From Macrostomum lignano (Eukaryota), in the NCBI GenBank assembly GCA_002269645.1, contig NIVC01002069.1:62001-126000 (forward strand): a stretch of DNA of 64,000 bases. Direction: 5' to 3'. Made by a program: the position numbers and the translations under genes. This document shows positions 1,635 to 57,500 of this stretch, in pieces. The notes under the pieces are model-generated. The model made no database searches, was not told the origin of the DNA, and saw only the letters and a list, made by a program, of their open reading frames with translations. How positions within the stretch are numbered: position 1 is the stretch's first letter; the number at the start of each line of letters is the position of its first letter.

Positions 1635-2499
1635 TGTGATTCGGGGCCCCATCCTCAGAGGGGCAGGGCCAGGATTATGACAACAGCTGTGTTCGGGGCC
1701 AAGACCTGTCTGTGTTAGTGGAAGAGTACATGGAGAAGTTGGTAGAAATCAACTACCGGCCGGTATCCAATCCTGAGGCTAGGCCCATCAACTCTCGTTT
1801 GGAGGCTTCGTGGATTTAATTATTGTTAAAAATATGATGTGCAAACGTAAAGAAGTGATTGATAGCTATAAAATTGTTGCTAAAATTAGCAAAAAGGAAT
1901 CTTTATTTGATTTGTAGTCTTTGAGATAGAATAAACTACAGTACCATATGACTACTGTAGAAAATATTTACCGTTTCTTGTGAATTTTCAGACTCGAGTC
2001 GATTTTCCTAGAATTACATCTATGCAATAGTATTAAGTTACGAAAAACAAAAAGTCCATAAAAACAATGAAAAATGTTTTTTCATGATAGACAGACTATA
2101 GACCAGAAAGAACTAGATTTTTTAGAGAAGTATGACTGTATTTGACATAATTGATCACAGTAAAACTCAATAATTAACATATATTTTTGTTTCAACCTCG
2201 TTCCTAGTTATTCATTCAAATACATGATTAAATACAATCGCCTCGTTTGGGTATTGACGTCTATTTTTAACTTGTTGATTAAAACTGAATTATTAAAAAA
2301 ATTAAACTTTCGTGTAAATACAATTTCAGAGACCTTTATATAAAGTAATCTTAAAGTCCTGCAGACTTGATTAAAATAAGCTTAGGTTAAAATAGGCTAT
2401 TAGGCTAGTTACATGTAACTTTTTATAAGTACTACATGTGTACTTTGCAAAGGCGTTCGACTCGGTGCTCAGGCTTGCGATCGCGTGTGCAGTGGGTAA

Positions 2500-3083
2500 C
2501 GTTGCTGTCCTACGGCGTTCGCCCTCCCTGGTAGCTGCGGTTGTGGTGCTGTACAGTGATTTCTGGGCGGTTGTCCAGACTAGCGACGGCCCGACCGAGA
2601 AATTCAGCACAACCTCCGGCGCCCTGCAGGGAGACACGCTGGCTCCCCTTGCTTTTCATCATTGTCGTAGATTTACGCGCCTTCCTTCAAGAGGATGCCA
2701 GCTACATGCTGGTCCCATGCCGAAGCTCCCGACATCTTGCTGGTGCGCTACGCGGGGCTCCACCAAGAGACAGGGGTGCGTGCTCTCGCGTATGCTGATG
2801 ACACATATCGCGCTTCTCTGTCGCGACCCAGCTGCTGTCCATGAACGCCCTCTTTTCCGGCTCTGTGATGAGGGCACCCGTGGGTGCAGCTGGTGGTCAA
2901 CGCGCGCGAGACAGATCGAAGTGATGCACTTGGGCACTGAGGCACTGACACCGTCCAGGCACTTGCGCTGCCCCCATGCAACGGAGATGTCATCGCCGTG
3001 TGCGAGGATTTCTGGTAGCTCGGATCGCTAGCTAGCAACGAGTCCGGTCTTCATTTATTGTCTCCGACGGAAGGAATCAGGCC
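2500..3083 (+). pseudogene. Degenerate non-LTR retrotransposon (RTE/L2-like) reverse transcriptase fragment
   Basis: Frameshifted motifs: GPTEKFSTTSGALQGDTLAP / LFIIVVD, LAYADD (tat gct gat gac at ~2791), IALL, and DFW*LGS (YLGS-like) at ~3006. Confidence 0.85.
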
Positions 3084-3966
3084 AAGGACCACAGAAGTTA
3101 CCGTTGTATCGATACATTATATCGCTATGTTGTAGTGCTATTAAAGTTTTATGCTTTATCCTAATCGCTGACACCAAGTTGTTGTAGGCCTCTTTACTAT
3201 TATTGTATTTTATCCCACCTTGCCACCAAGTTGTTGCAGGGGACTTCTATTATTCTCTAAATTCCACCGCAATCACCAAGTTGTACAAGGGTAAAACTTG
3301 CTATAATTCTAGAATTCCACAAAATTAGCTATTAGATTCGTTATAAACTACTAAAATACGGTGTCACGGAGTTGAGATTATGGGCTTTCACGTAAGCACG
3401 GATTGCCCTGGTAGCTCGCAGTGCCCGAGTGGCAAGACACTGTTTAGCAAAAATGGGGGGGGGTGACTAAGTCCTAAAGCAGCGCCCTCCAATGGATCGA
3501 GGTTGCCCGGTAAATTTCAATTTCCTCTTACGGATTTGCTCTTGTCATATACGACTTCTCATTGGTTTGTTCAGTTCGAACAGTTTATTGGGATATTTCT
3601 CCCCTTTCTATTGACTGGTTACGCCTCTGCTCTTTGCGAGTCCGCTATTGGCTCTTAGACTATTCGACGTCTCCTGCTTTTGGTAATTTCTACCTCTTGT
3701 CCAGTGAGCATTCGCTCTCAGCTTTTAGCAAATAAGGAAAGACTTTGAAAGATTCTTCAAATTTTTGTTAGGCAAATCGCCTATAAACCAAGGATCGACA
3801 GAGGAAAACTCGGTTGCCTCTCTGGGCGCAAAACTTGCTTCTATTTATATGAAAATTGGGGTGGGGGACGAGGTGCATTTAAACAAAATAATTCTACAAG
3901 CTACGCGTTTCCATAGTAAAGGCGGAAATTCAAACTAGGCCTATCTCAGCTACATCTACCAGAATC

Positions 3967-4340
3967 AATCAGGCCTGGCGCGCACCTGCTCAGGACAGCC
4001 TGAGGTGCGCCTCTTCAAGTCGGCGCGGCCGTGGAGCCGATCCTCCTGTACGACATGGAAGCGGTGCCGATTACCGACACACGGGAGCGAGCCCTGGACG
4101 CGCTCTACAGCTAGGTCTCCTGCCCTGCTGCGCTACGCTCTGGGCGTGCACTTAAACCCGAGGTTGCGGCCGCCTCCAGAGACCTGATAGCCCATGCACG
4201 CCGGCGTTCCAGACAATCGTCCCACCATGCGCCGTCGCCGCCAGAGATGTTGCTGGGTCACTGCCTCCGGAGTCACAGCCGCGGCGACCGAAAGTCTGGC
4301 CGTAAGCGCTGGCCCGCTGCATGCCTCCTGCTGCATCACC
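3967..4340 (+). pseudogene. C-terminal continuation of the same LINE relic
   Basis: Frameshifted NQAWRA...VRLFKSA..AVEPILLYDMEAVP...ALDALYS..LLRYALGVH, typical of the RTE-like RT thumb/C-terminal region. Confidence 0.75.
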
Positions 4341-4343
4341 CTA

Positions 4344-4523
4344 TAGTTGACAATCTTATGAATCGTCTGACAAGATCTGACGATGACTTACAAAATCTTG
4401 GAAGATCTTATCAGATCTGCGAAGAAACTTCAAGTCAGATCTTATACTTTATTAGGAAAAAGTATTAGAATTTTCAAGTAAGATCTGTCAAGTTTGCTAT
4501 CAAGTCGATCATATTGTCAACTA
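4344..4523. mobile_element. Possible small MITE (TA-flanked, short TIR GTTGACAAT)
   Basis: TAGTTGACAAT at 4344-4354 and ATTGTCAACTA at 4513-4523 are inverted repeats. The TIR is short and seen in one copy only. Confidence 0.35.
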
Positions 4524-5349
4524 GGGCAGCCCAACCGAGCAGGATTGCGCGATGGCCTAGGATAAACCAAGTACCAATAGTTACTTCAGTGGTGCCTGGG
4601 GCGAACTGCAGTGACGCTGACTGACTGTTTTGTCTGACTGACTAGCTGGCTTGCAGGCGCTGGGTCTCAGCCCAGACCGCAGCCGTTTGCCCCTGAAAAC
4701 ACTCAGGACACTCACGCAAAAAGTAGCGCATGCGGTTTTGTATTTTAACTTTTTCGTCTTGCAAAATCGGACGTTGTCTCGCCAGATCAGACGAAAGGAC
4801 TCACTGCATATTCTAATAATAAATCAGTTTCTCTATATAACTTTTTCTATTTGGACTAACATTTGTTATAAATTGTGTAGGTTTTAAAATCTGGTCTTTG
4901 GCTAAGTCAATTTTAGCAGCGTTTTTTTTCGTTTCGCCCAATATTGTCAATGCAACAAACACATTTTGTTAGCCTTTGTTTCGTCTCTGGTTAACCTTTT
5001 AAACGGCTTTGATTTCTGCTTTCAATAATTATGTACTTGCTGCTGTTTAATGCAGTATTTAAAGTAAAGTTCTGACATTATTATTATAAAAGACAAAGTG
5101 GTGAAACTGAAGTTAAAGCAGTTGAGTATAGGCCTAAACAGAGAAATAATAGGCCCGTATATTCTCATCAGAACAATCAGAAATTATCTTGCCTTGCACT
5201 AAACTATTTACGAAGAAAATTCGTCTGAAAGCTTCATTGGTCCTAGTTGTTATTGTCCTTTTCACTTATTTTTATAGTTTACATAAATAAATTCTAGTTA
5301 TTGACTTAGAAAGTTAGGTTAGGACTTCACTTTAACTTTAAGTTTTAAC

Positions 5350-8300
5350 ATGACATCACACCTTAATAAGAAAGAAAAATCTGAGCTGTCAGAAAAATTA
5401 TTCAACAATTTTAAAGTCCCATCATGGTAAGTTTAAAGTCATAAATTCATAAGTAGACCTATATCATGATAAGTAAGGCTTACATGTTTCTAATATAATG
5501 CATTAATTTTTATAAACCCTAGTGAGTGCCTAGTATTAGGCCTATATTATAATTTTATTAATTAATAAGCCTTGAGTTTAGTTTGTAGACATGGTAAATT
5601 TTTAGTCAGGTGTACCAATAATTCTGGAGAGTCAGAGTGGTCACTTTAGCAGAGGCTATGCTATGGTTGTTCTGGGACTGCTGGGTCTGGTCGCCAGATT
5701 GGTCAGTTATTGATTGTGTGATGACCATGATAATGCTAATGCTCTGCTACCAGTTTGTCATTTATTATTTTTTTTCTAAAGAATAGGCAAATAGTGCTAC
5801 TTAAAACAAATACAAACAAACTAGGTTTTGAGATGCCAGCTTATAGCCTCCTCTGCTTCTTCTTTGGCTCTTCAGCAAATGCCTTAGTATAGGCAGTGGA
5901 CATGCAACAGAACTGGTCCTTGTCTACCCTGAGTTGGTACAGTATGCATATGCACTCCTTGGTGATTGCTCCTGATTGGGTTCTGGCCAAAGTTGTCATA
6001 TTCGAGATTGTCATCTGCGGCTTATAAGAAAAACAACTAAATCATCTAAATTGTCATCATCTCAGTATTGGACAATGCTGCATTCACTAAATTGTCATAT
6101 AGTGAGTTGCATTAGCTGCGCAAGGATCTTAGCTCATGGCGGCAGCGTGTTCTTGCTTGCCAACAAATTAAAACAATTTATAATGAATAGGCCTAACTTT
6201 AGGCTAATATAACTTTAAACTCGCGTTCCTTGCTACTGCAGTCAGTTCTCTTTGCATAAACTAGTTTTGATATTCGTCATCTCTCTATTGTTTATTATAT
6301 ATTAGTCTCAGTAGTCATGCAGCAATCAGCATTAATTGACATAGTTAATATAAAAATTACGGGTGCATGCAAGGGATTTTTGCCTGATTCAGCCTGAAAG
6401 TAGGAATATCCTAAATTAATACACCCTTGCCTTTGGTCAAAGTCATCATATTTAAATGTTTAAGTCTTCCAGATTCGTTTAAGTCGTCATCATCATATGA
6501 CGATTTTGAATATGACAATTTTGGCTGCACCCCCTGATTGGCCCTCTGGGATGTCATTCCATATAATTATGGTCGTAACATGACAGGCTATTTTTACTTA
6601 TAAAATGAAATATAATAATAGAATATACTAAACCAATATTTCGAATAAAGGATTATTTTGTCAAGAATGCATTTATATAGTTTCATATAGATATCATCAT
6701 TAGTATAGATGCTATTAAACCTTGAATGGCACTTATGGTTGTAACAACAGGATTTTTGATATATAGAAACTAAAAGGTAAAAGTCTAAAAGGTAAATTTT
6801 TCATTTTTGATATTTTGCAATACATTTTTTTATTTGACTAAGAACATCTCCAGAAATCATAATCTTTTATTAGAATATATAAACTCATAAAGGCAACAAA
6901 GATACAAAATAAAAGGCAGCATTATGGTCGTAACATTATGGTCATAACATATTTTTTACTGTCAATTCAGTAACTTTGAGGTACCAATGTATTTAAAATA
7001 TAATTGATTATATAGTCACTAATGTCTTTATCCGATTATGCAAGTATAATTTATAGTATAATTATAGTATGCAACTATAATTTTATCTATAGTTTGTTTC
7101 AACCTTCCTAAGCTTTCCTTTTGTTTTTAAAAGGTACACAAACTTAATGATATCTTTTGCTTAGAAAAATGTCCAAATTTTTACAAAAATGACTTTTTGC
7201 TAATTTATAACTTACTAATCCAACATTTTCCCATTCATTTATTCTTGCACTGTATATATTACAAATTTAAAACATTTGGCAAAAAATGGCTGATAAGGCA
7301 ATGGCAAGCAAAAATATTGACTTTTTTCTATTTTCCAAATATGTCCATCTTATCTAGAATGAGCCTTAATATTGTAATTCATCCTATGCAATTACTAATT
7401 AGCTATAGAGCTTTACTCTTACTATAAAGGGGAGGTACCTTGTATACTCCTGAATTTAATTACTTAGATTCTCTTAAACATACAGAATTATCCTAGTAGC
7501 ATATAGTGCCAAGTGACAAAACATTGTTTTAGCTAGTTTTATTCTTAAGTGACATTCCTAATGAATTGAGGTTGCTAGGTATTTTCTTTTTCCAGTGTCT
7601 AGATTAGCTAGTTGTCTAATTCTGATTTCTTATTGGTAGACTTAGTTCAAAAAGGGCTAATTAGGAAATTTCTCCTTCTATACTTGGCAAATAATGCCTT
7701 TTCCTTCTTGCTATTTTGCAATTGGCCATTAGACTATTCATCTGCATGAGTTAGTGACTAGTGATTCTACTCACTAAATAAGTATTTGCTTCAAATTTAG
7801 GCATTTTTTATTAAAAAGTGAATCAAAGCAAGCCAATATAAAGAACAAAAATTTGCCATATTTATTTTCACAAAATGGGGATAGGGTGCAGCATATTTAA
7901 ACAAATCAAGTGTTTATAAGAATTTTTTGTTCCTATAGAGTTAGACAAAATTTGAAAGGGGTTGCCTCTATCAAATATGCTTGTATTAGTAAAGTTAAAA
8001 TTTTGGATTTTTTATTATTTAATTTTTTAGAACTTCTTAACATAGATATCTTGACACTTCATTTGCGAAACTTAGTCAAGTAATTAAAAATTTATAATAT
8101 TTTTAGTGTCTTGCTTTTTAAAATTTTTTGTTAGCTTTTAAATTGACATAATATATTTTCTATACATAAATACCAACTTCAGTGAAGGTCCCATGAGTTG
8201 CCAATATATATCCAGAATTTTTTTAGTATAAATAGGTTTTTTGCAAATGAAAAACACAGTTTGTAGATGAGAGGAAAGATGTGTGAAAATATAAGATGAG

Positions 8301-30300: not shown

Positions 30301-33300
30301 CGCAGTTCAGAACACAAAGGACCAGGCCACGTGTCCCTGCTGCTCCACTGCCAAGCCCGGCGCCCCTGCCGCCTCGGCGAGTCCCGCCACCCACGCCGCT
30401 CCGGCCTCGTCAACTGCCACCACAGTGTCTTCTGCTCAGCCGCTGTTCTCCTTCGGTGGAATGTCGTTCGGCGGCGGCAGTCAGCAAGTCAGCAAGCCGA
30501 CGGCGTCCGCCGGTGCGGGCGCCGCCGCTCCCAGCAGCTCAGCCTCACCCTTTTCCAATTTCTCCTTTGGCTCTTCCGCTAGCAAGCCGTCAGTTTCTAC
30601 TGCCGCCCCTATTGGCTTGGCCGCAGCTTCATCATCAGCAGCATCATCAACTGCCGCCGCTCCGGCGCCATTCGCCAGTTTTTCATTCGGCATGCCGCCG
30701 AAATCTTCTGCCGCCGCGTCTTCCACCGCCACTGCCGCTGCTCCCGCCAGTTTTGCCGGTTTCGGCGGCGTCAGCTTTAGCGGGCTGAACTTTGGCTCGT
30801 CAAAGTCGCCAGCGGCAACGGCTACCGCTGCTGGTGGGCCTCCGTCGCCGGCTGTTGCTGCAGCCGGCGCTGCGTCCGCCTCTGCCGCTGCTGCTGCTGA
30901 CGATTCAGCTGACAATCCTGAGAGCTTCGAACCGTCTGTTGAATTTGCGCCCGTGGTTAATCTGCCGGATAAGGTTGGTTTATAATACCGCTAACAAATT
31001 CCTTAGGGTCAAGATGTCGTTAATTCGCAACCGTACCTACAATGAGGGACCCGTTGAGTGCGTTACCGTGACCAGCCAGAATCGCTAAAGAGCAATTGCA
31101 AGCAACTCACTAGTGACTCTAGCGACTCTTTGGCGACTCGTGTGACTTTTTAACAACTCAAACCACTGTTATGCGATAGAGAGGCGACTGTTGAGTTAAA
31201 AATGCATCACGTGAGTTGCAGAATCGTAAGAGAGTCACGAAAAAGTTGTCCAATAGTCGTTGCGTTGGCGTTTTAACTTTCTACTAACTCAACAACTAGA
31301 CTAAATAGAGTTGTTATAAATGCGAAATACGGTTCTAATTTATAAACTGACGCAGATGCGCTTCTAACGCAACTCGGTGATTCTACAGCGATTCTGGCAC
31401 GCCTCAGGTACGACTCTACGGCCCCTGTGTCATTAAAGATCGAAGCATCCCAGAATCGTTTAGAGTCACTTCTTTCCTATTTTCATCCCCTGCGTTACCT
31501 GCAATGACTCTGGCCCGCTTGTTCACCCAGTATAAGAGGGGGGGCTCACGTTTTTTATCCATTTTCCTCTCCTCAGTTTGCTAGGGATTAATGAGATAAA
31601 ATGGGGTTTAGATGATAAAAACTAAAGTATTTTCGAAGCCATCCATTCCGCATTTTGTTTAACGTATATCTTCTCTAATTAAGTATCGAAAATCTGTGAA
31701 TGACTCGAATCAGCTTACATTATTATTTAAAATTCGATCATTTCTCTTGAAGCAGTTAGCTTGTAGAAGCTAAGTATGCTTGCATTCAGTTACTGCCCCT
31801 CAGGTTAATTAGTTGTTAGTCATTTATTTAGTTAGCTATAGTTAATTAGTCTGTTAGTTAGTTAGTCATTTATTTAGTTAGCTATAGTTAATTAGTCTGT
31901 TAGTTAGTTAGTCATTTATTTAGTTAGCTGTAGTTAATTAGTCTGTTAGTAAGTTAGTAAATTAGTTAGTCCAAACCAAGGTATTTTGTCGCTAGAAAGT
32001 TGGATGCCTTAGCTTTTACCTTGGCTTGCTTCCAGGTGTTTTTTCTTGTCTAAATTGGTCAAGTTTACAGAATCATATTATAAACTTGCTCTAACAATAC
32101 TGATTTTCAATGTCGCTACTCAAGGTGGAGGTGAAGACTGGCGAGGAGTCGGACGTGCGGCTGTTCGCGGAGCGGGCCGCCCTCTACCGATTCGTGCAGG
32201 GCGAGTGGAAGTCCCGCGGCATCGGCGAGCTGAAGATTCTGCAGAGCGAAGGCGGAGCCAAATACCGAATTGTGATGCGGCGCGATCAGGTGAAGAAGCT
32301 GTGCGCCAATCACTGGATTGATGCGGCAATGAAGCTGAAGGAGGTGCAGAATGTCGCCAACGCCGTGTCCTGGACTGCCAACGATTTCTCTGACGGCGAG
32401 GCCAAGATGGAGATTCTGTGCGCCAGGTTCAAAACGCCTGAGCAGCTGGCTGAGTTCACCGCCAAGTTCACCGAGAGTCAGAAGGCTCTGCAGTCTGGAA
32501 AGCAGGTAGCTCCATCAGCTGCTGCTCCTAGTGATAGCAAGGCCGCTCCAGCGGCTGCAGCCTCATCAAGCTCAGTTCCCAGCCTCCTGGACCGGCTGAA
32601 GCCGCCACCAGGCAGCTGGTCCTGCCCGACATGCGCAGTTCAGAACACGAAGGACCAGGCCACGTGTCCCTGCTGCTCCACTGCCAAGCCCGGCGCCCCT
32701 GCCGCCTCGGCGAGTCCCGCCACCCACGCCGCTCCGGCCTCGTCAACTGCCACCACGGTGTCTTCTGCTCAGCCGCTGTTCTCCTTCGGTGGAATGTCGT
32801 TCGGCGGCGGCAGTCAGCAAGTCAGCAAGCCGACGGCGTCCGCCGGTGCGGGCGCCGCCGCTCCCAGCAGCTCAGCCTCACCCTTTTCCAATTTCTCCTT
32901 TGGCTCTTCCGCCACCGCTGGTGGTGCCGGGACAGCTTCGACAATCAAGTTTGGCTTTGGTGGTTTCGGCTCGACACCAACTTCGGCTGACAAGGTGGAA
33001 CAGGCGCCGTTGTCAGATAAAGACTCGGCCGCCGCGAAGGACTCAAAGGATAAAGACTCGGCCGCCGCGAAGGACTCAAAGGACAAAGACTTGGCCGCCG
33101 CGAAGGACTCAAAGGACAAAGACTCGGCCGCCGCGAAGGACTCAAAGGACAAAGACTCGGCCACCGCCAAGGACTCAAAGGACAAAGACTCGGCCGCCGC
33201 GAAGGACTCAAAGGACAAAGACTTGGCCGCCGCGAAGGATTCAAAAGATAAAGACTCGAACGACTTGGTTCTGGTCGGCTTCGAGCCGTCCGTCACCGAC

Positions 33301-37720: not shown

Positions 37721-40700
37721 TCAGAGCATCTGTTGATCCGACGAATTCTTCAACGTCGGCACTCCGTCGTCTTCGCCGACTTCGCTACCGGAAGCTCCGC
37801 CGTCCCGATGCTCTCCGTCGTCAGTCAGGTTGCCCTCTGGCGGCTTAAACACAGAGCTGTCCATCAGCATGTCCTCTTCTGCGTCGCCTGTGCGCTTTCT
37901 GGTCTTCTGCTTTTTCTGGCCCAGCTGCATCGGCGAGGCGGCGCCGCTGCGCACCTGGATGATCTCCGACAAGTTGCTGGCCGACTGCTGGCTGACTCCG
38001 CTCTGTCGAGCTCGCGGATCGCCTTCGTTCAGCGACTTTTCAAATCTGTGGTTATAAAAATTCGAGTCGTTTTCTTAGTTTGAACATCTGATCCAATCTT
38101 GTGTCAACTTTTGGTTTGGCGAACTTGTTACATATATTAATATGGGTAAAATATTCGAAAAGGTTTTTTTAGGCCATTTTTAGATAGTCTCTTAGAGATT
38201 GCTCGAACGCAGCGAATCTTCGTGTGCATAGGATTTGGCGCCCCCTTCTCACAGCAGGTTTGGCGCCCCCTTCTCACAGAAGGTTTGGCGCCCCTTCCTC
38301 GCTACAGGTTTGGCGCCCCCTTCTCACAGCAGGTTTGGCGCCCCCTTCTCACAGCAAGTTTGGCGCCCCCTTCTCACAGCAGGTTTGGCGCCCCCTCCTC
38401 AATGCAGGTTTGGCGCTCCCTCCTCACAGCAGGTTTGGCGCCCCCTTCTCACAGAAGATTTGGCGCTCCCTCCTCACAGCAGGTTTGGCGCCCCCTTCTC
38501 ACAGCAGGTTTGGCGCCCCCTTCTCACAGCAGGTTTGGCGCCCCTTCCTCGCTACAGGTTTGGCGCCCCCTTCTCACAGCAGGTTTGGCGCCCCCTTCTC
38601 ACAGCAGGTTTGGCGCCCCCTTCTCACAGCAAGTTTGGCGCCCCTTCTCACAGCAGGTTTGGCGCCCCCTCCTCAATGCAGGTTTGGCGCTCCCTCCTCA
38701 CAGCAGGTTTGGCGCCCCCTCCTCACAGCAGGTTTGGCGAACTTCTCACAGCAGGTTTGGCGCCCCCTCACAGCTCACCCAACATTATTGAATTCTCCCG
38801 TTCCGTTGCGACTCCCGGCGACTCCAGCGGCTCCGTTATTGCCGCCGCCTCCGCCGCTCCAGTCAATGGCGGCTCCCGCCGACTTTCCCGATTTGCTTTT
38901 CGACTTGTTGGACTTGTTCTTTGACGACTTCTTCTTGTGCCTCTGCTGCTTCTGCTTGCCATCAGATCCGGGCTCAGTGTCCAGAGCCACTTTGTCTGAC
39001 TGCAGCTGCTGCTTCTGCTGCCCTGTGGACAGGTCTCCGGCCTTGAAATCCGCGCCCGAGGCAGCCACTTTGTTATCGCGCGTTGATTGTTCTGACTTCC
39101 TGCGCGGGTGCATCTCGCTGCTGGCGCTGGCCAGGTTCTTGCGGTGCTGCTTTGTCCTGGAAGAGTAGAAGTGGCAGGCATAGAACCCACTGAGTTCGTC
39201 ATCATCATCAGAACCAACATTCTCTTCATCGTTATCATTATAGCACTATCATCATCATCATTATCGTTAAGCGTCATTATCTTTATGATCATCATCTTCA
39301 TTATCACCATCATTATTATCATCAACATAATCATCATCACTTTATCATCATCATTACCATCATCATTATTATCATTACAATTATCATCATATCATCATCA
39401 TCATCATCATCATTATTATCATTATCACTTTATCATCATCACCATCATCATCATCAACATCACTTTATCATCATCATCATCATCATCATCATCTTTATGA
39501 TTATCATCATCACCATCATCATATTTTTTCATCTCTAAAAGCATAAAAATCACAGAAAGCAGAATAATATTTCCACAACTCACTGATGATGTCTCAAAGC
39601 CAAGGCCACAATAATGAGAACCAGAGTGCCCAGCACAAATATTGGCACAATCACTTTATTGGCGAGCACTGGCGGCGGTACAGAATAGAAAATGGCGTTG
39701 ATGTAGACCAGACTGTAGCCCACGGAAGTTGAAACGGATTCGCGTTGTTTCTGGGCAATTTCTAGGAAATGGAAGGAGAAAAACAAATATACACGCCATC
39801 TATCAACTACTTGTTGTTGTTGTTAAACGGGGGTGGGAAGCCGGGAGCTACCCGCGGATCAGCCCTGGGAGGGGCTCTGCCGCTGAGGGGCACTACCAGG
39901 GGCATATAGCCCGAGATTGGACCCTGACGTCTGCAGGCCAGGGGAATCTGCCAACCCAAGCCTTATGGACTAAGACACCGCCAACCCAATTTGTGGAATC
40001 AGGGACGGTGCTAGGACCGAATCCACCCAAGCCACCACCCAGCGGACAAGTCCCGGGAGTGCGCGAAAAAAGAATTGGAAAATGTTTGGGTTACTACTGA
40101 AAAGCGGTCCGAGAGCGGAGACCCAGAAGTCTACGGAAATGGCTTAATTTTGAAGTGAGTCTGGAAGGCTTGTTTCCGAGGGCGAGTCTCCTATCAGGCT
40201 ACCAGAAAACCTATAGGGCTGCAAGCCACGAGGGTGTCACCTATCCAGCTCTATATTGGAGGCCAGGCCAAGGAGTCGGGAAGGGGCACAAGGGGCAAGA
40301 GGACCCGGACTCAGCCGGTATCCCGATTCGGGGCGAACTCATTCCCCAGGACTCCAATCCACTGTCAGGATGAGAGCCAAGACACTAGATCTATTAACTA
40401 CTTACTTCGCTTAGTGTTATTGATTTCTAAGAAATCTAAATTAAAAAAATTTCTCTTGTTGCCAACAGGGTGCCCATTTTCGTATGGCGCTAATTTGGGT
40501 GTCACTCATTTTCTTTGCGACGCTAATTTGGGGGTGGCGCTCATTTTCCTGTGGTGCTCATTTTCCTGTGGCGCTAATTTTAGAGCGCCCATTTTCCTGT
40601 GGCGCTATTTGAAGGCGCCCTATTTTCTTTGTGGCGCTCATTTGGATTAGCCAAGTTTCTTGTGGCGCTAATCGGTCCTCGAAAGCTCCATTTTAGCGCC

Positions 40701-43355
40701 GTATCCTGACATTAAAATTTTGCAATGCCATGTAGTCTAAAATAACAAGCTGATAATAGAAATTGCCATAAGCAACTTGCCTGCAACCGCAGCAGCTGGA
40801 AGGCGAACCCGGCTCGATCCAACTGTGTACTCAATGCCAACGCGAACATTGAGGTAGCGTGATTTGTAATTTACCGGATATCCGGCGCTAATTACCACCG
40901 ACGAAGCTGTGAAACTCCTGAAATTTGGAAAGGAGCAGAAAAAGGTATTGATACGCGTCGTGTACTACTCGCAGTAGCTTCTCTAAGGAGGGTGCCAGAT
41001 CATGAAGAAGAGTGCCAGATTCTCTAGGAAGAGTGCCAGATTCTCTAAGGAGAGTGCCAGATTCATTAAGGAAAGTGCCAGATTCTCTAAGAAAGAAGAG
41101 TGCCAGATTCTCTAAGAATAGTGCCAGATTCTCTAAGAATAGTGCCAGATTCTCTAAGAATAGTGCCAGACTCTCTAGGAAGAGTGCCAGATTCTCTAGG
41201 AAGAGTGCCAGATTATCTAAGATTAGTGCCAGATTCTCTAGGAGTGCCAGATTCCCTAGGAAGAGTGCCAGATTCTCTAAGAAGAGGCCAGATTCTCTAA
41301 GAAGAGCGCCAGATTCTCTAAGAAGAGTGCCAGATTCTCTAAGAAGAGTGCCATATTCTCTAAGAAGAGCGCCAGATTTTCTAAGAAGAGCGCCAGATTC
41401 TCTAAGAAGAGCGCCAGATTCTCTAAGAAGAGCGCCAGATTTTCTAAGAAGAGGCCAGATTCTCTAAGAAGAGTGCCAGATTCTTTAGGAAGAGCGCCAG
41501 ATTCTCTAAGAAGAGGCCAGATTCTCTAAGAAGAGCGCCAGATTCTCTAAGAAGAGCGCCAGATTCTTTAGGAAGAGCGCCAGATTCTCTAAGAAGAGGC
41601 CAGATTCTCTAAGAAGAGTGCCAGATTCTTTAGGAAGAGCGCCAGATTCTCTAAGAAGAGGCCAGATTCTCTAAGAAGAGGCCAGATTCTCTAAGAAGAG
41701 TGCCAGATTCTCTAAGAAGAGCGCCAGATTCTCTAAGAAGAGCGCCAGATTCTCTAAGAAGAGGCCAGATTCTCTAAGAAGAGTGCCAGATTCTTTAGGA
41801 AGAGCGCCAGATTCTCTAAGAAGAGGCCAGATTCTCTAAGAAGAGCGCCAGATTCTCTAAGAAGAGTGCCAGATTCTTTAGGAAGAGCGCCAGATTCTCT
41901 AAGAAGAGGCCAGATTCTCTAAGAAGAGCGCCAGATTCTTTAGGAAGAGCGCCAGATTCTCTAAGAAGAGCGCCAGATTCTCTAAGAAGAGTGCCAGATT
42001 CTTTAGGAAGAGCGCCAGATTCTCTAAGAAGAGGCCAGATTCTCTAAGAAGAGGCCAGATTCTCTAAGAAGAGTGCCAGATTCTTTAGGAAGAGCGCCAG
42101 ATTCTCTAAGAAGAGGCCAGATTCTCTAAGAAGAGCGCCAGATTCTCTAAGAAGAGTGCCAGATTCTTTAGGAAGAGCGCCAGATTCTCTAAGAAGAGGC
42201 CAGATTCTCTAAGAAGAGCGCCAGATTCTTTAGGAAGAGCGCCAGATTCTCTAAGAAGAGCGCCAGATTCTCTAAGAAGAGTGCCAGATTCTTTAGGAAG
42301 AGCGCCAGATTCTCTAAGAAGAGGCCAGATTCTCTAAGAAGAGGCCAGATTCTCTAAGAAGAGTGCCAGATTCTTTAGGAAGAGCGCCAGATTCTCTAAG
42401 AAGAGGCCAGATTCTCTAAGAAGAGCGCCAGATTCTCTAAGAAGAGTGCCAGATTCTCTAAGAAGAGGCCAGATTCTCTAAGAAGAGTGCCAGTTTTTAT
42501 ATATCTAGATAGAAGGGTTTAGAAATGCCTATGGTCTGGGAACTTTCGCGAATGTGGCATACTGGGGCCAATCCTCTTTCAATACACAAGCCAGCTCACT
42601 CACACATCCGATGTCGAGTTGATGCCGCAGGTGACAAAATTCGCTCTGTTCGAACAGTAGTCCTTTAGTCCGGTGAGCATTGCCGACTGCAGCTTTGTCT
42701 GTTGGTTCTCCTGCTCCCACTGTATTTGTATAGAATTGTTTCTAGTCAATTTGAGCCACAAGTTTCACAGATTACACTACTGATTAGTGCGAGTAGCTAG
42801 TGAAGATTTTTTATATGATTTGAAAAACAATAGTGTTTAGTTTACAGAAAAAAAGCCAAATGCGGTGGGTTTGCATGGTTTCTCTGCCTACACAGTCTGT
42901 CTTACTGTTGGTCTGAGTTTCTGTCTCCGTACAAGCGTGTCTTAGTGTCCTAATGTCTATCTGTCTTTGTGTCTGTCTGTCTGTCTTAGTGTCCTAATGT
43001 CTATCTGTCTTTGTGTCTGTCTGTCTGTCTTAGTGTCCTAATGTCTATCTGTCTTTGTGTCTGTCTGTCTGTCTTAGTGTCCTAATGTCTATCTGTCTTT
43101 GTGTCTGTCTGTCTGTCTTAGTGTCCTAATGTCTATCTGTCTTTGTGTCTGTCTGTCTGTCTTAGTGTCCTAATGTCTATCTGTCTTTGTGTCTGTCTGT
43201 CTGTCTTAGTGTCCTAATGTCTATCTGTCTTTGTGTCTGTCTTTCTGTCTTAGTGTCCTAATGTCTATCTGTCTTTGTGTCTGTCTGTCTGTCTTAGTGT
43301 CCTAATGTCTATATGTCTTTGTGTCTGTCTGTCTGTCTTAGTGTCCTAATGTCTA

Positions 43356-43428
<73 letters not shown>

Positions 43429-43573
43429 ATGTCAGTTTGTATGCTTTTATACTTACCAGTGTCACTTGATTCATGTAGAATTGCAAGAACACATCATTAC
43501 CAGCACTAGCAAGTGCAGCTTTTAAGTAAATAACAACCAAAATTTGTAGAATTGTTTGCTTGGTAACATTCAT
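37721..43573 (-). CDS. Uncharacterised type-I single-pass membrane protein, 427 aa (signal peptide, ~130-aa SEA-like ectodomain, TM helix, long basic/disordered tail); exons 43573-43457, 42719-42604, 40917-40781, 39761-39584, 39189-38779, 38045-37721
   Basis: Six exons join with phases 0,2,1,2,2 into one stop-free 1284-nt ORF: MNVTKQTILQILVVIYLKAALASAG|NDVFLQFYMNQVTL-WEQENQQTKLQSAMLTGLKDYCSNRANFVTCGINSTSD-VSFTASSVVISAGYPVNYKSRYLNVRVGIEYTVGSSRVRLPAAAVA-EIAQKQRESVSTSVGYSLVYINAIFYSVPPPVLANKVIVPIFVLGTLVLIIVALALRHH-HGFYACHF... The acceptor at 39190 is weak. Confidence 0.75.
38230..38768. repeat. 25-bp minisatellite (AGGTTTGGCGCCCCCTTCTCACAGC)n, intronic
   Basis: Period 25, read directly. Confidence 0.95.
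39195..39525. repeat. Degenerate (ATC)n/(ATT)n microsatellite, intronic
   Basis: Read directly. No continuous reading frame runs across it. Confidence 0.9.
39813..40388 (-). mobile_element. 5'-truncated non-LTR retroposon insertion with (CAA)n tail
   Basis: GC-rich insert flanked by ATCTATCAACTACTT (39798-39812) and ATCTATTAACTACTT (40389-40403), a 15-bp TSD with one mismatch. A (GTT)n tract abuts the left TSD. Confidence 0.7.
41000..42492. repeat. 20/21-bp minisatellite (AGAAGAG(T/C/-)GCCAGATTCT(C/T)TA)n with a 290-bp higher-order repeat
   Basis: The variant order at 41771 recurs at 42061 and 42351. Confidence 0.96.
42938..43427. repeat. 44-bp repeat built from TCTG units (about 9 copies), followed by pure (GTCT)n
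   Basis: CTGTCTTTGT recurs at 42961 and 43005. Confidence 0.95.
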
Positions 43574-43839
43574 GCTGCAATTTTTTTAACTGTTGAATTA
43601 GTCGGTATGTAAGGATAGTATTCAGAGCTTGCTCAATATACTTCGTATATAAATGTGGATTAGCTGGAAAGAAAATGTTTTTACCTGTATCTTCAGACCA
43701 ATCACACACATACCTGTCATTGGACTGATCAAGGGACCGCAGTCCTTCTTTGTGTAATGAATAATTTAACAAAAACTGCATTAGGCATTCAATCTGGTGA
43801 GATCTGATAGATGGCTAAGAATTACCTTTACTTGAATGG

Positions 43840-43871
43840 GTTGCCCATAGCAACGGAATCTCCCTGGCAAC
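43840..43871. promoter_or_regulatory. Two tandem RFX X-box-like motifs upstream of the - strand membrane protein gene
   Basis: GTTGCCCATAGCAAC (43840-43854) fits GTNRCC-N0-3-RGYAAC. ATCTCCCTGGCAAC (43858-43871) fits RTHNYYWTRRNRAC with one mismatch. They lie ~270-300 nt from the ATG at 43573. Confidence 0.55.
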
Positions 43872-44079
43872 GACCAGTGGTATCCATTGGTATCGTTTGA
43901 GTGAAAATATCTCTTCAATACTTGTTTATGAGAGAACAGAAAAGCTTTACTTTATAGTGTCTTTTAAGAGCGTACAATTTAGCAAATCAAGGCTGACCCC
44001 TGAGCATGCACAGTGTTACGTCCGCGGGCATATGTTCACACGCGGTGTACGGTACACGTAATTGTAAAACGCTCTTGGG

Positions 44080-50058: not shown

Positions 50059-52968
50059 ATGGCTGGTCGCCCACCCAACAGCGATGATGGCACAGTGTTC
50101 AAGCTTGTTGTAGTCGGCAATGGCGGCGTTGGGAAAAGCGCTTTGACAATTCAGTACTTCCAGAAGATGTTTGTGCAAGATTATGATCCCACGATTGAGG
50201 ACTCTTATATCCAGTTTAAGATGATTGATAACGAATGGTACTTGCTTGATGTGCTGGATACAGCAGGTAAGTTCGCTTTGATTATTTGAAATGTCAATAG
50301 TTTGGTTGACAGTTGGCAAAGGTCACTGAGTGTGCACTGAAAACGTTACTATGATAAGAATCGCTAAAGAGTCATCGCAAACAACTCACTAGTGACCTCG
50401 ATCTAGGAGTCTAGGGACTCTAGGCCGACTCCTGAAGCCTTTTGACGGCTCAAACGACTGCAATGCAACATATTGGCAACTGTTGAGTCATTAGCGCATA
50501 ACGTGCGTTGCAGAATCGTAAATGGGTCGCCGCAGACGTCCTAAATTGACTTTTAACGACTTGTACTGTGACGTCTCTACGTTTAGAGCCGTTAAAAGTC
50601 ACTTCTTTCCTACGGTATTTTACCTGTGTTACCTGTAACGACTCTGAGGCGATGCAAGTGGCTCTGGGACGCTTCCTGGCCTAGGTAGCTACCGTATTCA
50701 TCGGACAGTCGTTGACTTGGTTGCTGCCACAGCACACGTACTTTAAGAATAAAAAATTCAGGGTCACTGTACCAAATTTGCATTCTCCGGGGTTAACTGT
50801 CACTTTGTGGTTGTACATACTGGTCTAAATCTGTTCTAATCTGACATTGAACTCATTATTAATCTGTGATGACAGCTTTGATGCCAAAAACCTAGGATAA
50901 TTAGCATTTATATCTTTATATCAACGATTTGCAATGACTTACCTCCAGGACAAGAGGAGTTCTCAGCCATGCGAGAGCAGTACATGCGCAAAGGCGACGG
51001 CTTTCTGTTGGTCTATTCCGTTACTGATCGAAAAAGCTTCGAAGATATTCGACATTTTCATACGCAAATTTTGCGTGTTAAAGATCGCGAACATTATCCA
51101 ATGATTCTACTGGCTAACAAGGTGGATCTCGTGCATCTGAGGCAGGTGTTTGAGGACGAAGGCAAAGCCCTGGCAAGTCAACTTAAAGTGAGTTCGTTGG
51201 ATTAAATATTTCTTCATCTTAATTGAATCAGTCTGTGACTGCTTGCCATAGAGAGGGAGGAGAGAAGCGAGATGAGAGAAGAAATAGGAAGGTGGGGGAG
51301 GGAGAGAAGCGAGATAAGAGAAGAAATAGGAAGGTGGGGGAGGGAGAGAAGCGATATGAGAGAAGAAAGAGGAAGGGGGAGAGAGACGAGTTGAGTGAGG
51401 AAAGGGGGAGAGGATAGGAGAGGCGAGAGATGAGAGAGGAAGAGAAAAGAGAAGAGAGCTGAGAAGAGACAAACATTGAGCGGGCGGGATTGCTATTGTG
51501 ATGTTTCCCGGACCCACCCGAGGGCCGGATAGAGAGGCTTTGCGGGCCGCATGCGGCTTCTGATCTGGAGTTTGCCGACCTCTGTGTGAAAATTGAAATG
51601 AAATAGTAAGTCATAGAATTAGCAGTAGTGATAGTTTACTGGCTCAGGAAAACTTTTCTGTTCACCAAGCATAAGTTGATGTATTTAATAGTAGGAATTT
51701 TTTCATTTTAATTACGACTATATAGTCTGTCTAAACTGCAGTTCAACCTATCAAATGTAATGAGCTATATTGCTAAACTAATGTGCAAATTATGTTAGAA
51801 TTTGGCTTCTTGAATTCACTTATCGCTGAGATCAAGGCTAACGAATTGTTTGTGCAGAAGAAATGTTTATTATAAACTGTTGAGTGCTTTTTCGGCAGCT
51901 GCCACGCTTTTCTTGGCAAACCGGAAGTTGGCCCTACTAGCTTTTGTGAAAAGAAAACTTAGATACCTGCAATATATAAGGATTAGTGGGTCTTGGCGCT
52001 TCTTAGCTTTTAATAATCTAGTCAGGAAGGTGCAGTTCAGTTAACTGAATAACTGGGTTTCCGGCTGACCTGGCTTTCTTGCAACTACTGCATTTAATAC
52101 AGATAACAGATGTCCTGTAGTGTTAATTATAGTGTTAACTTTTATTTTAAAATAATGTAAGTCATGTCGGAATAGGAGTGCTGAAATATTTCATACACCA
52201 CAAAGAATTACCCATCAAGCTAATAAAAATTGCCTATCGAGGCCTTAACAAACGGCTATTAAAACTCAAAATCGCTCATCAAAGCCACTTAAAATCGCCG
52301 ATCAAAGCCCCAACAATCGCCCGTCAAAGCCCCAAGAATCGTCCGTCAAAGCCCCAACAATCGCCCATCAAAGCCCCAAGAATCGCCCGTCAAAGCCCCA
52401 AGAATCGCCCGTCAAAGCCCTAAGAATCGCCAATCAAAGTTTCAAAAATTACCCGTCAAAGCCCCAAGAATCGCCAATCAAAGTCTCGAGAATTACCCGT
52501 CAAAACCCCAAGAATCGCCCATCAAAGTCTCGAGAATTACCCGTCAAAACCCCAAGAATCGCCCATCAAAGTCTCGAGAATTACCCGTCAAAACCCCAAG
52601 AATCGCCCATCAAAGTCTCGAAAATTACCCGTCAAAACCCCAAGAATCGCCAATCAAAGTCTCGAAAATTACCCGTCTAAACCCCAAGAATCGCCAATCA
52701 AAGTCTCGAGAATTACCCGTCAAAGCCCCAAGAATCGCCCGTCAAAGCTCCAACGATCGGTCATAAAAATCTCAGGAATCGGTTATCGAACCCCCACCCT
52801 CAGATCCAGTACATCGAGACCAGCGCCAAAGACCCGCCATTCAATGTTGATGAAGCGTTCAACACAATTGTACGAATTGTTCGAAATCAGCCACGCGAGG
52901 CGGCACCGGCGAAAGAGAAAAAACGGCGCAGAGGCGCGGGGCGCAAACTCAAATGCGAGCTCATGTAA
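50059..52968 (+). CDS. MRAS: M-Ras (R-Ras3)-like small GTPase, copy A, 203 aa; exons 50059-50266, 50949-51187, 52804-52968
   Basis: G1 [39 protein letters not shown], the M-Ras-specific [12 protein letters not shown] and ILRVKDRE, a polybasic tail and CaaX CELM. Confidence 0.95.
50340..50690 (+). repeat. ~450-bp dispersed repeat family member in M-Ras A intron 1
   Basis: Homologous to 31075-31515 and 54780-55275. Confidence 0.75.
51250..51584. mobile_element. hAT-like MITE with purine-rich core (M-Ras A intron 2)
   Basis: Ends GAGTTTGCCGACCTCTG (reverse complement CAGAGGTCGGCAAACTC). It is absent from the equivalent intron of copy B. Confidence 0.65.
52285..52770. repeat. 22-bp minisatellite (CCCGTCAAAGCCCCAAGAATCG)n becoming a 44-bp dimer
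   Basis: Period 22 at 52381/52403 and period 44 at 52501/52545. Confidence 0.93.
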
Positions 52969-54501: not shown

Positions 54502-57500
54502 ATGGCTGGTCGCCCACCCAACAGCGATGATGGCACAGTGTTCAAGCTTGTTGTAGTGGGAAATGGTGGCGTTGGGAAAAGTGCTTTGACAATTCAGTAC
54601 TTCCAGAAGATGTTTGTACAAGATTATGATCCCACGATTGAGGACTCTTATATCCAGTTTAAGATGATTGATAACGAATGGTACTTGCTTGATGTGCTTG
54701 ATACAGCAGGTAAGTTCGCTCTGATTATTTGAAATGTCAATAGTTTAGTTAGTTGGCAAAGGTCACTCAGTGTGCACTGAGAACGTTACTGTGATACGAA
54801 TCGCTAGAGTAATTGCAAATAACTCACTAGTGACTAACGACTCTATAAACTACTCTAGAGGCTTTTAAACTGCTCAAACGACTGCAATGCAACGGAGAGG
54901 CGACTTGAGTGATGGTCGCATCAATTGAGCTGTAGATCTGTAGGAGCCACAAAATGTCGTCCAATAATCGTGTTAGACCTTTACTTTCTATTAACTTCAA
55001 TCCACTAAAGTTGTTATAAATGCGAATGAGATTCAAATTCATAAACTGATGCGGATGCGCTTTAGATGCAACTCGGTGTTTCTAAAGCGACTCTGGCCCC
55101 AGAGTCATTAAAGAAACGCCCCAGAGTCGCAGACAATAAAACGTCCCAAATTGACTCTTGGTGACATCTCATCGTTTTAGAGTCGTCTAAGAGTCACTTA
55201 CCTATTTTACCTGTGTAACCTGCAACGACTCTTGGCGACGCAAGTGACTCTGAGACGCCTCTTGGCCTAGGTACCGTTTTCATTATGCAGTCATTGTTTT
55301 GGTTCTCTGGCACAGTACGCACTGTGACTGTGCACCATGTTCGTGCTTAGGGGTCACCTATGTGATTGTTTATACTGTTCTGTTCTAATCTGAACGTGCC
55401 GTTACTACTTTGTTATGTCTTTGCAGGTCAAGATGAGTTCTCTGCCATGCGAGAGCAGTACATGCGCAAAGGCGACGGCTTTCTGTTAGTCTATTCCGTT
55501 ACTGATCGAAAAAGTTTCGAAGATATTCGACATTTTCATACGCAAATTTTGCGCGTTAAAGATCGCGAACATTATCCAATGATTCTACTGGCTAATAAGG
55601 TGGATATCGTGCACCTGAGGCAGGTGTTTGAGGACGAGGGCAAAGCCCTGGCAAGTCAACTTAAAGTGAGTTCGTTGGATTAAATACATTTCATCTTATG
55701 AAATTAGCTTATAATTATAGTAAGTTTGGAGTACAGGTTGGCTGTGGTACAGTATGTAGTACGCAAGGAAAGGAACGTCGTTAGAATATCTCTGGGAGAA
55801 TTCTGCTACTACTCTTATTTAAGTACACACGTTTACGAAACAAGGCGCTACAAACACACCCTCTGAGAACAAAGTAAAGGAAGTGTGAACAAAACAATGT
55901 ACGGTAGAGAAAACTGATCAGACAGGTTCAATAATTTTAATCAATGTATGCGCAGCAAACTAAGCACTGCAACATCAACCGAGTCCGATGCGAGGGTGTA
56001 GCTGGTTTTATACGATCGATTGACACCACTGAAGGCTTGCTGTTGGTTTCTAACGTGAATTTTGTCTGGTGTCTGTCTAAAGTCATACGTGGGTACATGC
56101 ATGCAGCCAAAGCAGACGGAAGTTGAAGGACGGAGGCGCGTTCGTGCATAGTTGGGTGTAAGGAAAAAAACAGCTGGTGCAGGCTTGTAAACAGCTCCTT
56201 GGCAGTGGACCAATGACTGTCTCGTCCCCGAAAATATGCATCTCGCGGAGCACAACAGGTAGCTGCTGGAGCCAGTCCTTTCTGCGTACTCTCAACCCAA
56301 CCTTCAGCGTCCGATAGATACTCAGCGATGCCATTCGCTCTCGGATATTTTAGGTTGGTGCGCGAGTGTAATAAAAAATTCCGAGCAGTATCGTCAAACT
56401 CTGCATGAGCTCCGCGCGGAACTGCCAGCCCTGGTCACTCGTCACGACCGTCAATGGTGGGCCGAACGGCGAAATCCTGGATTCTAGAAAGTGCGGCTGA
56501 CTTGGCGACGATGTCGGGTGGCTTCAAATCCAGCGCGAATACGCGTCGACCATCGTGAGCAAGTAGCGAGGCCTTGGACTGACATCGGTAGCCGTGACAA
56601 CCTGTCTTACACTGCTGACATTAGGCCATCAATTTTAGGATATCGACGATAACCATGTCCAGACAAAAGAAACGATAAATACAAGCGTAATGAGCCGTTG
56701 AGTAGCCTTGCTTCAATGGTGTGCGAACGAATGCAACGAATCGAACACGGCGTAGGTTTGTCTACTAGACAAAGACGCACCGCAGCGGGCAGTCCTTGAT
56801 GCCGGCCCATGTCGAAGTTGCTAAAACCACCTGTTTAAGAATCGGTCTCCGGGCTCTAACTGTGCCCAAGCGACGACTGGCAGGTCCACGCATTGCGGAA
56901 TGTCAGATTTGAGCCGAACAGTAGCTATTGGTTGGTCCTAGGCGGGGTAGACCAGCTGTTGTTATAGCGCGTCGGCCACGATGTTGTCTTTGGATAGTTA
57001 GAGTTGCTGCCGGTCAGAGAAACACCCTTTCCTATTCTCGAACACTCCGATGATGGGTTTGTGATCGCAGAACATGGAGGTCTGTTGATCCTGGATCATG
57101 TACTTCTGTCTTGACCGCGGAAAAGTAGGGAGTAGCTCTCAGCCTGCTGCTTCTGTATTGGATAGCTTGTGTAAGTAGAAAGCCAATAGTGAAGACTGCC
57201 CAGCTACTACCTGGTTGAAAGCTTCTTCAATGGCGGTGGCGCTGAAATCTTTTGTGACTGTAAACGGCTCTTGAGATGCCTTCCAAGCGCCTTCGTATCG
57301 ACTTGTCTAAATGAAAGAAGCAGTGACGAGCTGTCGTGGCGGGACGGCGTTATCGGCATAGTTGGGAATGCGCCGCTGGTAAAAAAAACATTCCGTGGTA
57401 GCGTTGCAATGATTGATAATCAGTGGGAAACTCGAGAGTTTTAGCGGCCGAATGCTGTCGGAAGCGACGAGGTTGCCAAGAAACTGCACTGAGTCGCGAA

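Follow-up and report, generated by a model that had tools for sequence, protein, structure and literature searches.

Which protein is made from a gene whose short exons lie among satellites and a retroposon, and to what other proteins could it be related? This question is raised by a six-exon gene at positions 37721-43573, minus strand, of a 64,000-nucleotide stretch of Macrostomum lignano DNA (contig NIVC01002069.1, positions 62,001 to 126,000; hereafter, the window). A preliminary description, drawn from the letters alone, had presented it as a hidden gene for an orphan-like membrane protein with a SEA fold, probably ciliary. We report here that it is a real, expressed M. lignano gene for a type-I membrane glycoprotein of the DUF8077 family. 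As far as homology and fold are concerned, we also consider it likely that its ectodomain is distantly homologous to the collectrin domain, found in collectrin (TMEM27) and in the neck and transmembrane (TM) region of ACE2.

We rebuilt the gene base by base from the sequence, and its six exons chain in phase as follows.

43573-43457, minus strand: exon 1, 117 nt, with the ATG at 43573, the signal peptide (aa 1-24, cleavage motif ASA|G) and the first beta strand; donor GTAAGT, phase 0.
42719-42604, minus strand: exon 2, 116 nt, with helix alpha-1, the conserved W40, Y60-C61 and C70; donor GTGAGT, phase 2.
40917-40781, minus strand: exon 3, 137 nt, with the central beta strands; donor GCAAGT at 40780, opening a GC-AG intron, phase 1.
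39761-39584, minus strand: exon 4, 178 nt, with helix alpha-2 (conserved Arg130), the last strand, the FYSVPPP juxtamembrane motif, the invariant Asn158 and the TM helix (~39589-39657); donor GTGAGT.
39156-38779, minus strand: exon 5, 378 nt, with the first portion of a disordered cytoplasmic tail rich in S, G, K and Q; donor GTGAGC.
38045-37721, minus strand: exon 6, 325 nt including the TGA (37723-37721), with the remaining tail, the polybasic KKQKTRKR and an acidic C-terminus.

The acceptors of all five introns are pyrimidine-rich and end in AG. At the end of exon 3 the donor, CAG|GCAAGT, follows the consensus at every position other than the C of its GC, and with the alternative donors near exons 2 and 3 the frame is lost to stop codons. 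The string LPAAAVA|EIAQKQRESVSTSVGYSLVYI spans the junction of exons 3 and 4. The coding sequence (CDS) amounts to 1251 nt, that is 416 aa and not the 427 aa first claimed.

One could wonder whether such a chain of exons, with introns filled with satellites, is anything more than a decaying duplicate or a chance succession of open reading frames (ORFs) among repeats. The comparison with a homeologous locus, L001 (contig NIVC01003858.1), which is collinear with the window, bears directly on this point. In L001 the exons have equal lengths and equal splice signals, the GC donor included, and they are 98.3% identical to those of the window (21 differences in 1251 nt; 96.4-99.7% per exon, exon 6 being at 99.7%), while introns and flanks are ~87-90% identical. 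Over the whole CDS, amino-acid changes are numerous relative to silent ones (14 vs 7), as a non-functional copy would lead one to expect. The two regions of the protein nevertheless behave differently, with 3 amino-acid vs 6 silent changes in the ectodomain and TM segment and 7 vs 1 in the tail. These ratios indicate that ectodomain and TM segment are constrained and that the tail is free; judged from the substitutions, purifying selection thus acts on the former. Both homeologs keep an open frame and every splice site, a transcript-derived model exists for the homeologous copy, the structure predicted for the constrained ectodomain is a confident one, and the intron/exon structure is kept across phyla (see below). 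The comparison of the homeologs and the cross-phylum gene structure effectively refute the idea of a non-functional locus, to which we give next to no credit.

The transcript-derived model corresponds to the GenBank entry PAA49501.1 ("hypothetical protein BOX15_Mlig017839g1, partial"), which has the same junctions as the window model and in which a read-through 5' leader of 19 residues precedes a 416-aa protein. The Mlig_3_7 annotation was built with StringTie/TACO on RNA-seq data, with experimental 5' and 3' boundaries (PMC5730564), and the junctions are therefore derived from transcripts, although for the other genomic copy. With phases that chain, the same junctions in the RNA-seq-based model of the homeolog and introns that match those of orthologues, the six-exon structure first put forward is borne out. 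Its supposed invisibility holds in part: the four short exons among satellites are easily missed, and three UniProt models of older date, 265 aa long, lack exons 1-3, starting at exon 4, and mis-splice the TM region, but a full-length hypothetical-protein model does exist in GenBank for the homeolog. Concerning the start, the leader differs from that of L001 by a 1-nt indel, so that in the window the upstream ORF is not in frame, which supports the ATG at 43573. This ATG is directly preceded (43574-43585) by AAAAATTGCAG|C, a good splice-acceptor-like site. Spliced-leader (SL) trans-splicing affects many M. lignano mRNAs (PMC5730564), and from its letters the site could be a candidate trans-splice site; the annotated transcript of the homeolog reaches at least 57 nt farther upstream.

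We then asked whether the protein has relatives. With ectodomain and TM segment as query, we searched 1.84 billion representatives exhaustively with phmmer and obtained 26 matches at E<=1e-3, of which ~20 are true family members and two are repeat-protein artefacts. The family is found in five phyla: in molluscs, with bivalves (Mercenaria, Pinctada, Crassostrea, Mytilus, Mya, Solemya) and gastropods (Haliotis, Babylonia, Batillaria, Plakobranchus), in the nemertean Lineus, in the sea star Acanthaster, in the hemichordate Saccoglossus and in the flatworm itself, which has two further Macrostomum paralogue groups. E-values were 2.5e-9 for Pinctada (P0008), 8.8e-5 for Acanthaster (P0025) and 7.9e-4 for Saccoglossus (P0029). 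These three members carry PF26284, named DUF8077 in the Saccoglossus gene table, and the domain aligns with them end to end, with motifs in common. On the grounds of whole-domain similarity and orthologous gene structure, we thus assign the protein to DUF8077 (PF26284). All the relatives found are uncharacterised, and we found no paper mentioning DUF8077 or Mlig017839. Being already annotated and falling within an existing Pfam DUF, the gene is neither hidden nor an orphan, contrary to what had been supposed. A word-indexed search with the full-length protein returned the M. lignano cluster only, and its profile version added few sequences; the low-complexity tail probably swamped the word index.

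What family members have in common is a signal peptide, the motif FY..W in the first strand and turn, a helix that terminates in Y-C, followed by a second Cys, then a conserved Phe, an Arg in the second helix, G-Y-x-I-T-Y-I, F-Y-G-I-P-P, an invariant Asn, IIIPIA and the TM helix. Their tail is basic, with a poly-Lys run to which the polybasic run of exon 6 aligns, and frequently ends in T-E-L/I. The flatworm protein is the most divergent branch, with ~24% ectodomain identity to the members outside Macrostomum; it differs from its relatives in lacking the LPPL motif and the TEL C-terminus, and in its gene the intron that follows the signal peptide has been lost.

The gene structure provides a further test of this kinship. 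Exact spliced alignment of four orthologues (Haliotis, Solemya, Pinctada, Saccoglossus) places introns 1-4 of the five in M. lignano (phases 0, 2, 1, 2) at the same alignment positions. Exon 1 corresponds to two exons in the orthologues, whose second intron (phase 0, just 5' of the conserved Trp) matches its 3' end. At the end of exon 2, all four have a phase-2 intron one to two codons 5' of the conserved Phe, and at the end of exon 3 they have a phase-1 intron at the same place. The exon encoding the TM helix measures 178 nt, with the same phases, in M. lignano and in each of the four orthologues. The shared introns and this 178-nt exon strongly and independently confirm the model as well as the orthology.

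In Saccoglossus, Pinctada and Haliotis, the DUF8077 gene stands head to head with an enoyl-CoA hydratase-family gene (ECH_1/ECH_2; L002, L003 and L004, each 1-6001), at distances of ~0.5 kb, 2.8 kb and 0.3 kb, respectively. The pair looks conserved between a deuterostome and molluscs, and a bidirectional promoter is possibly shared. In M. lignano this pairing is not found, the upstream neighbour being a Ras-like gene.

The machine-given names of the family in UniRef clash with one another: TRAP delta, SSR alpha, DIS3-like exonuclease 2 and DRAM2 (A0A1I8G2A7, A0A1I8JHB9, A0A1I8GQZ2, A0AAV4DLA3). Two M. lignano paralogues are called 'Translocon-associated protein subunit delta' and 'Signal sequence receptor subunit alpha', and these names are all that speaks for a subunit of the translocon-associated protein (TRAP) complex of the endoplasmic reticulum, delta- or alpha-like. 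We rejected this identity: the paralogues have no TRAP match in Pfam even at E<=1, nor did the 24 family members searched give one, and no TRAP chain occurs among the top 50 fold matches. Being inconsistent and having neither Pfam nor fold support, the names look machine-guessed, and a TRAP subunit seems to us extremely improbable.

The type-I layout anticipated in the preliminary description proved correct, with the signal peptide, a single ~130-aa domain, one hydrophobic TM segment (~aa 159-181) and a long, disordered and basic tail. The predicted Cys pair is also there (Y60-C61 ... T69-C70), at the end of helix 1, and is conserved in the family. As to the tail, said to be Lys-rich and of ~245 aa, it is indeed disordered and basic, but it counts 234 aa and is rich in S, G, K and Q, with K at 10.7%. 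The ectodomain has one N-glycosylation sequon (N73) and is probably N-glycosylated.

The whole protein and 24 family members gave nothing but noise in Pfam (Neur_chan_memb, YxzE, SIT, on TM or low-complexity segments). Against the PDB, the single protein returned one weak match (PilA, E 0.62) and the family profile returned TLR4 TM peptides only. We predicted the structure with AlphaFold2 from a 21-sequence family alignment, the first row of which is the ectodomain of the homeolog (G71A, S84A and Y108F relative to the window protein). The mean confidence (predicted local distance difference test, pLDDT) was 95.0 for ectodomain plus TM helix and 95.5 for the ectodomain alone, with predicted template-modelling scores (pTM) of 0.79 and 0.88, respectively. 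The model displays a beta-alpha-beta-beta-alpha-beta topology, i.e. a ferredoxin-like sandwich, plus an extra hairpin, followed by the TM helix; the domain sits directly on the membrane, via the conserved Pro-rich juxtamembrane motif.

Searching this model against the PDB with Foldseek, as the preliminary description had proposed, placed full-length ACE2 chains first (complexes ACE2-B0AT1 and ACE2-SIT1, e.g. 6m17_B and 6m18_B), whether the query included the TM helix (E 3.5e-4) or lacked it (E 3.4e-3; query-normalised TM-score, TMq, 0.56-0.58), with a probability of 1.0. The portion of ACE2 that is matched is its C-terminal collectrin-like region, and a collectrin probe aligns to ACE2 611-776. 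A SEA-like group comes next: the ferredoxin-like domain of Nup54, CELSR1, the mature ectodomain of IA-2/phogrin, MAD28 of CDH23, and PCDH15. The protein resembles these juxtamembrane domains (IA-2/phogrin, CDH23 MAD28, PCDH15 MAD12, Nup54) in its alpha/beta sandwich topology and its position next to the membrane; it superimposes on IA-2 with a root-mean-square deviation of 3.1-3.4 Å and a target-normalised score (TMt) of 0.64-0.72. Their E-values are weaker than that of ACE2 (IA-2 0.15-0.3, CDH23 ~0.3), with the exception of Nup54, which at 6e-3 comes near it.

The SEA fold foreseen for this domain, with IA-2 indeed among its neighbours, is therefore retained as a broad ferredoxin-like class, to which IA-2/phogrin, CDH23 and PCDH15 also point, whereas a canonical SEA domain is not supported and ACE2/collectrin are closest. 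With the canonical domains of MUC1, MUC16, enteropeptidase and agrin the protein has the general beta-alpha-beta-beta-alpha-beta class in common. The window protein does not match the canonical SEA family PF01390 in Pfam, though, and no mucin-type or canonical SEA structure occurs among the top 50 fold matches. At the place of the G|SVVV autoproteolysis motif it has SSVVIS, and the family shows no conservation of either the Gly or the motif. Pei and Grishin reportedly classed collectrin itself as a divergent SEA domain (Protein Sci, 2017).

Could the resemblance to ACE2 reflect common descent? We compared the family profile (A2) with a profile of collectrin and ACE2 built from database sequences (A4) using hhalign. 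The two align over 92 columns, all of them in the ectodomain, with a probability of 90.8% and a P-value of 1.2e-6, whereas controls with one reversed and 21 column-shuffled versions of A4 gave P-values of 0.13-0.8. In register, this alignment agrees with the structure: Trp is paired with Trp, Phe with Phe, the Arg..Ile of helix 2 with ACE2 R708..I711, and FYGIPP with EFLGIQP. The two families thus align at the conserved Arg...Ile in helix alpha-2 and at the EF-G-I-P motif that follows the last strand.

Beyond the domain, a parallel can be drawn between the two whole architectures. Collectrin/ACE2 and DUF8077 proteins alike are type-I and have a signal peptide; in both, a ferredoxin-like neck rests directly on the membrane, the linker is rich in Pro, the TM helix is highly conserved and the juxtamembrane stretch is basic. 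The T-x-hydrophobic C-termini of the former resemble the T-E-L/I ends of several DUF8077 members. Collectrin genes from Solea (L007) and Rhincodon (L006) have six coding exons, with intron phases 1, 0, 2, 2, 2: phase 1 after the signal peptide, 0 near the Trp, 2 near the Phe and 2 after the TM helix. DUF8077 introns of equal phase are found no more than two codons away from the first three of these introns and from the one after the TM helix. Such similar exon plans weakly support shared ancestry. The taxon ranges are also complementary, all identified DUF8077 matches being invertebrate and all named collectrin/ACE2 matches vertebrate, which would fit one ancient family with two divergent branches. 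We did not find this link between DUF8077 and the collectrin-like domain of ACE2 stated in the literature, in which no DUF8077 papers were found.

Several observations weigh against a relationship with collectrin. The Pfam hidden Markov model of collectrin (PF16959), which the library searched does contain, matches neither the window protein (E<=10) nor the 24 family members (E<=0.01). Identity in the fold matches is just 11-13%, the TM-scores are moderate (0.5-0.58), and the scores of Nup54 and IA-2 are close behind that of ACE2, which leaves room for a generic SEA-like stalk. The structure compared is, besides, that predicted for the ectodomain of the homeolog, three substitutions away from the window protein. 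Differences from collectrin are also apparent in the proteins and the genes: DUF8077 has the conserved Cys pair and the extra hairpin; its tail, of 150-250 aa with a poly-Lys run, is three to four times longer than that of collectrin (~60 aa); the introns are displaced by two codons, and the one in helix 2 is of another phase. Finally, the flatworm protein ends in QML, without the T-x-hydrophobic C-terminus.

If the ectodomain is indeed of the collectrin type, what could the protein do? By analogy, we tentatively propose, without going so far as to call it probable, that it would act as a single-pass accessory subunit of a multi-pass carrier, most plausibly an SLC6 amino-acid transporter. The neck domain and the TM helix would dock onto this multi-pass partner, most plausibly of the SLC6 type, docking would aid the trafficking and stability of the partner at the cell surface, and signals for sorting or docking in the cytosol would come from the disordered basic tail. 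Juxtamembrane and TM segments are the best-conserved part of the family, with a mean pairwise identity of 39% vs 29% for the ectodomain, and the TM helix of collectrin/ACE2 is likewise near-invariant. Such conservation in a single-pass protein points to a specific intramembrane partner. Supporting this idea, PMC10914197 presents collectrin as chaperoning neutral amino-acid transporters in their trafficking, and the ACE2 structures matched are precisely those of the B0AT1 and SIT1 complexes, in which neck and TM helix of ACE2 bind both carriers.

Another hypothesis is that the domain serves as a SEA-like stalk, the ectodomain being shed and the membrane stub cleaved by intramembrane proteolysis, which would free a polybasic tail resembling a nuclear localisation signal for signalling. 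The fold neighbours IA-2/phogrin, CELSR1, CDH23 MAD28 and PCDH15 are in line with it, as is the conservation of the poly-Lys/Arg run of the tail. SEA-like domains without an adjoining domain are, moreover, constitutively shed in the SNAPS assay (PMC6586460), and ADAM10/17 sheds the collectrin-like part of ACE2 (PMC9111296). On the other hand, no autoproteolysis motif is conserved, the tail evolves fast between the homeologs, and the strongest conservation lies in TM and juxtamembrane segments, where it would point to a stable intramembrane partner. We thus regard shedding and release of the tail as unlikely.

It had also been proposed, on account of X-boxes upstream of the gene, that the protein is a ciliary surface receptor or adhesion protein controlled by RFX factors and made in ciliated cells, an idea that is compatible with a collectrin-like function. 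We searched for strict X-boxes with the consensus GTNRCC N0-3 RGYAAC and compared the upstream region with that of the homeolog, which brought out the following elements.

43840-43854: strict X-box (RFX-type) GTTGCCCATAGCAAC, 267-281 bp upstream of the ATG, identical in L001.
43866-43871: extra half-site GGCAAC, 12 bp farther upstream than the X-box.
43776-43911, minus strand: putative core promoter block, 136 nt identical between the homeologs, containing the X-box.

Of the several X-boxes announced, there are thus one full site and one half-site. In the 64-kb window we counted three distinct strict sites vs ~0.8 expected from shuffles, and the chance of finding one within 500 bp upstream of this ATG, computed from window counts, is ~0.006-0.02. 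The upstream regions of the homeologs are 87.9% identical over 952 aligned columns, and the 136-nt block is their longest perfect run, the next one measuring 70 nt. The location of the X-box in this block is real evidence of a constrained promoter element, not of cilia, since such conservation could stem from any promoter function. From these motifs, transcription in ciliated cells via the upstream X-box is possible. The other two strict X-boxes of the window are at 30805-30819 (GTCGCCAGCGGCAAC) and at 4249-4261; the former is also present in L001 and lies inside a neighbouring gene for a 2271-aa protein without Pfam domain.

Two X-boxes that are perfect palindromes occur within the DUF8077 gene of Saccoglossus, where 0.13 are expected from shuffles: GTTGCCATGGTAAC at L002 19714-19727, in the 14.7-kb intron 2, and GTTGCCGCGGCAAC at L002 24087-24100, in coding exon 6. 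These two sites count in favour of a ciliary role, but one of them falls in coding sequence. Between -3 kb and +1.5 kb relative to the ATG, no strict X-box was detected in any of the four orthologues (Saccoglossus, Pinctada, Haliotis, Solemya), in which unannotated 5' untranslated exons may hide the promoters. The protein has no ciliary targeting motif or known ciliary domain, and we found no expression record for Mlig017839 in the literature or in the supplements of two M. lignano papers. The single paper tying collectrin to primary cilia (PLoS One 2007, PMC1853234) was retracted in 2023 (PMC10194965), and we therefore rejected this link as support. Altogether, a well-placed X-box kept in the homeolog, with none near the start in four orthologues, is suggestive only, and we hold a ciliary surface receptor or adhesion protein to be rather doubtful.

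The ciliary and collectrin-like ideas could be reconciled. In planarians, the proximal tubule of the protonephridium is multiciliated and expresses SLC6 carriers (PMC4500094), which offers one way to do so. A speculative scenario, which as a whole we would not expect to hold, is that DUF8077 proteins are the invertebrate counterparts of collectrin, an ancient single-pass module that was later fused to an ACE-type peptidase to give ACE2. RFX would activate the flatworm gene in transporting epithelia that are multiciliated, for instance the proximal tubule of the protonephridium, and the product of the gene would chaperone SLC6 transporters there as collectrin does in the vertebrate proximal tubule. 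If the resemblance of ectodomain and TM helix to collectrin and the ACE2 anchor holds, the collectrin module would be older than vertebrates, with a possible pre-vertebrate origin of the ACE2 anchor, DUF8077 would gain a function as a transporter accessory subunit, and a molecular link would be added to the similarity between flatworm protonephridia and the vertebrate nephron.

The gene itself is ordinary, a hypothetical protein already annotated and within an existing Pfam DUF. The benefit of the analysis lies in a testable functional lead for an uncharacterised family of at least five animal phyla, whose ectodomain and TM helix resemble the collectrin/ACE2 anchor. Both transgenesis and RNA interference work in M. 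lignano, so that the X-box and the function are directly accessible to experiment.

The introns that separate the exons described above each contain a tandem array, a different one in each of the five. In intron 3, where the array has 17/31-bp units, a further insertion is present. The repeats and the insertion are distributed as follows.

42938-43426: satellite of intron 1, 44-bp unit x11.
40979-42493: satellite of intron 2, 21-bp unit x73.
39813-40388, minus strand: insertion in intron 3, 576 bp, retroposon-like, with an (AAC)n tail in gene orientation.
39199-39522: (ATC)n microsatellite of intron 4.
38234-38768: satellite of intron 5, 25-bp unit x21.

In the homeolog (L001 10250-16820), the same arrays are found in the same introns with different copy numbers (e.g. 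for the 21-bp and 25-bp units), which indicates that the satellites are older than the duplication and evolve by copy-number change. The 576-bp insertion has another history. It is flanked by a 15-bp direct repeat (39798-39812 and 40389-40403, 14/15 identical) that resembles a target-site duplication; it is missing from the homeologous locus, where the flanking repeat exists as a single copy. Its absence there implies that it was inserted after the genome duplication. No second copy was found within the 64-kb window, ARAGORN detected no tRNA-like head in the insertion, and an Rfam search of the whole window gave no matches.

Finally, two tandem genes for Ras-family small GTPases (Pfam Ras, E 2e-44) are located ~6.5 kb upstream of the DUF8077 gene and are transcribed divergently from it, on the plus strand, at 50059-51205 and 54502-55683. 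The first two coding exons of these copies are nearly identical.

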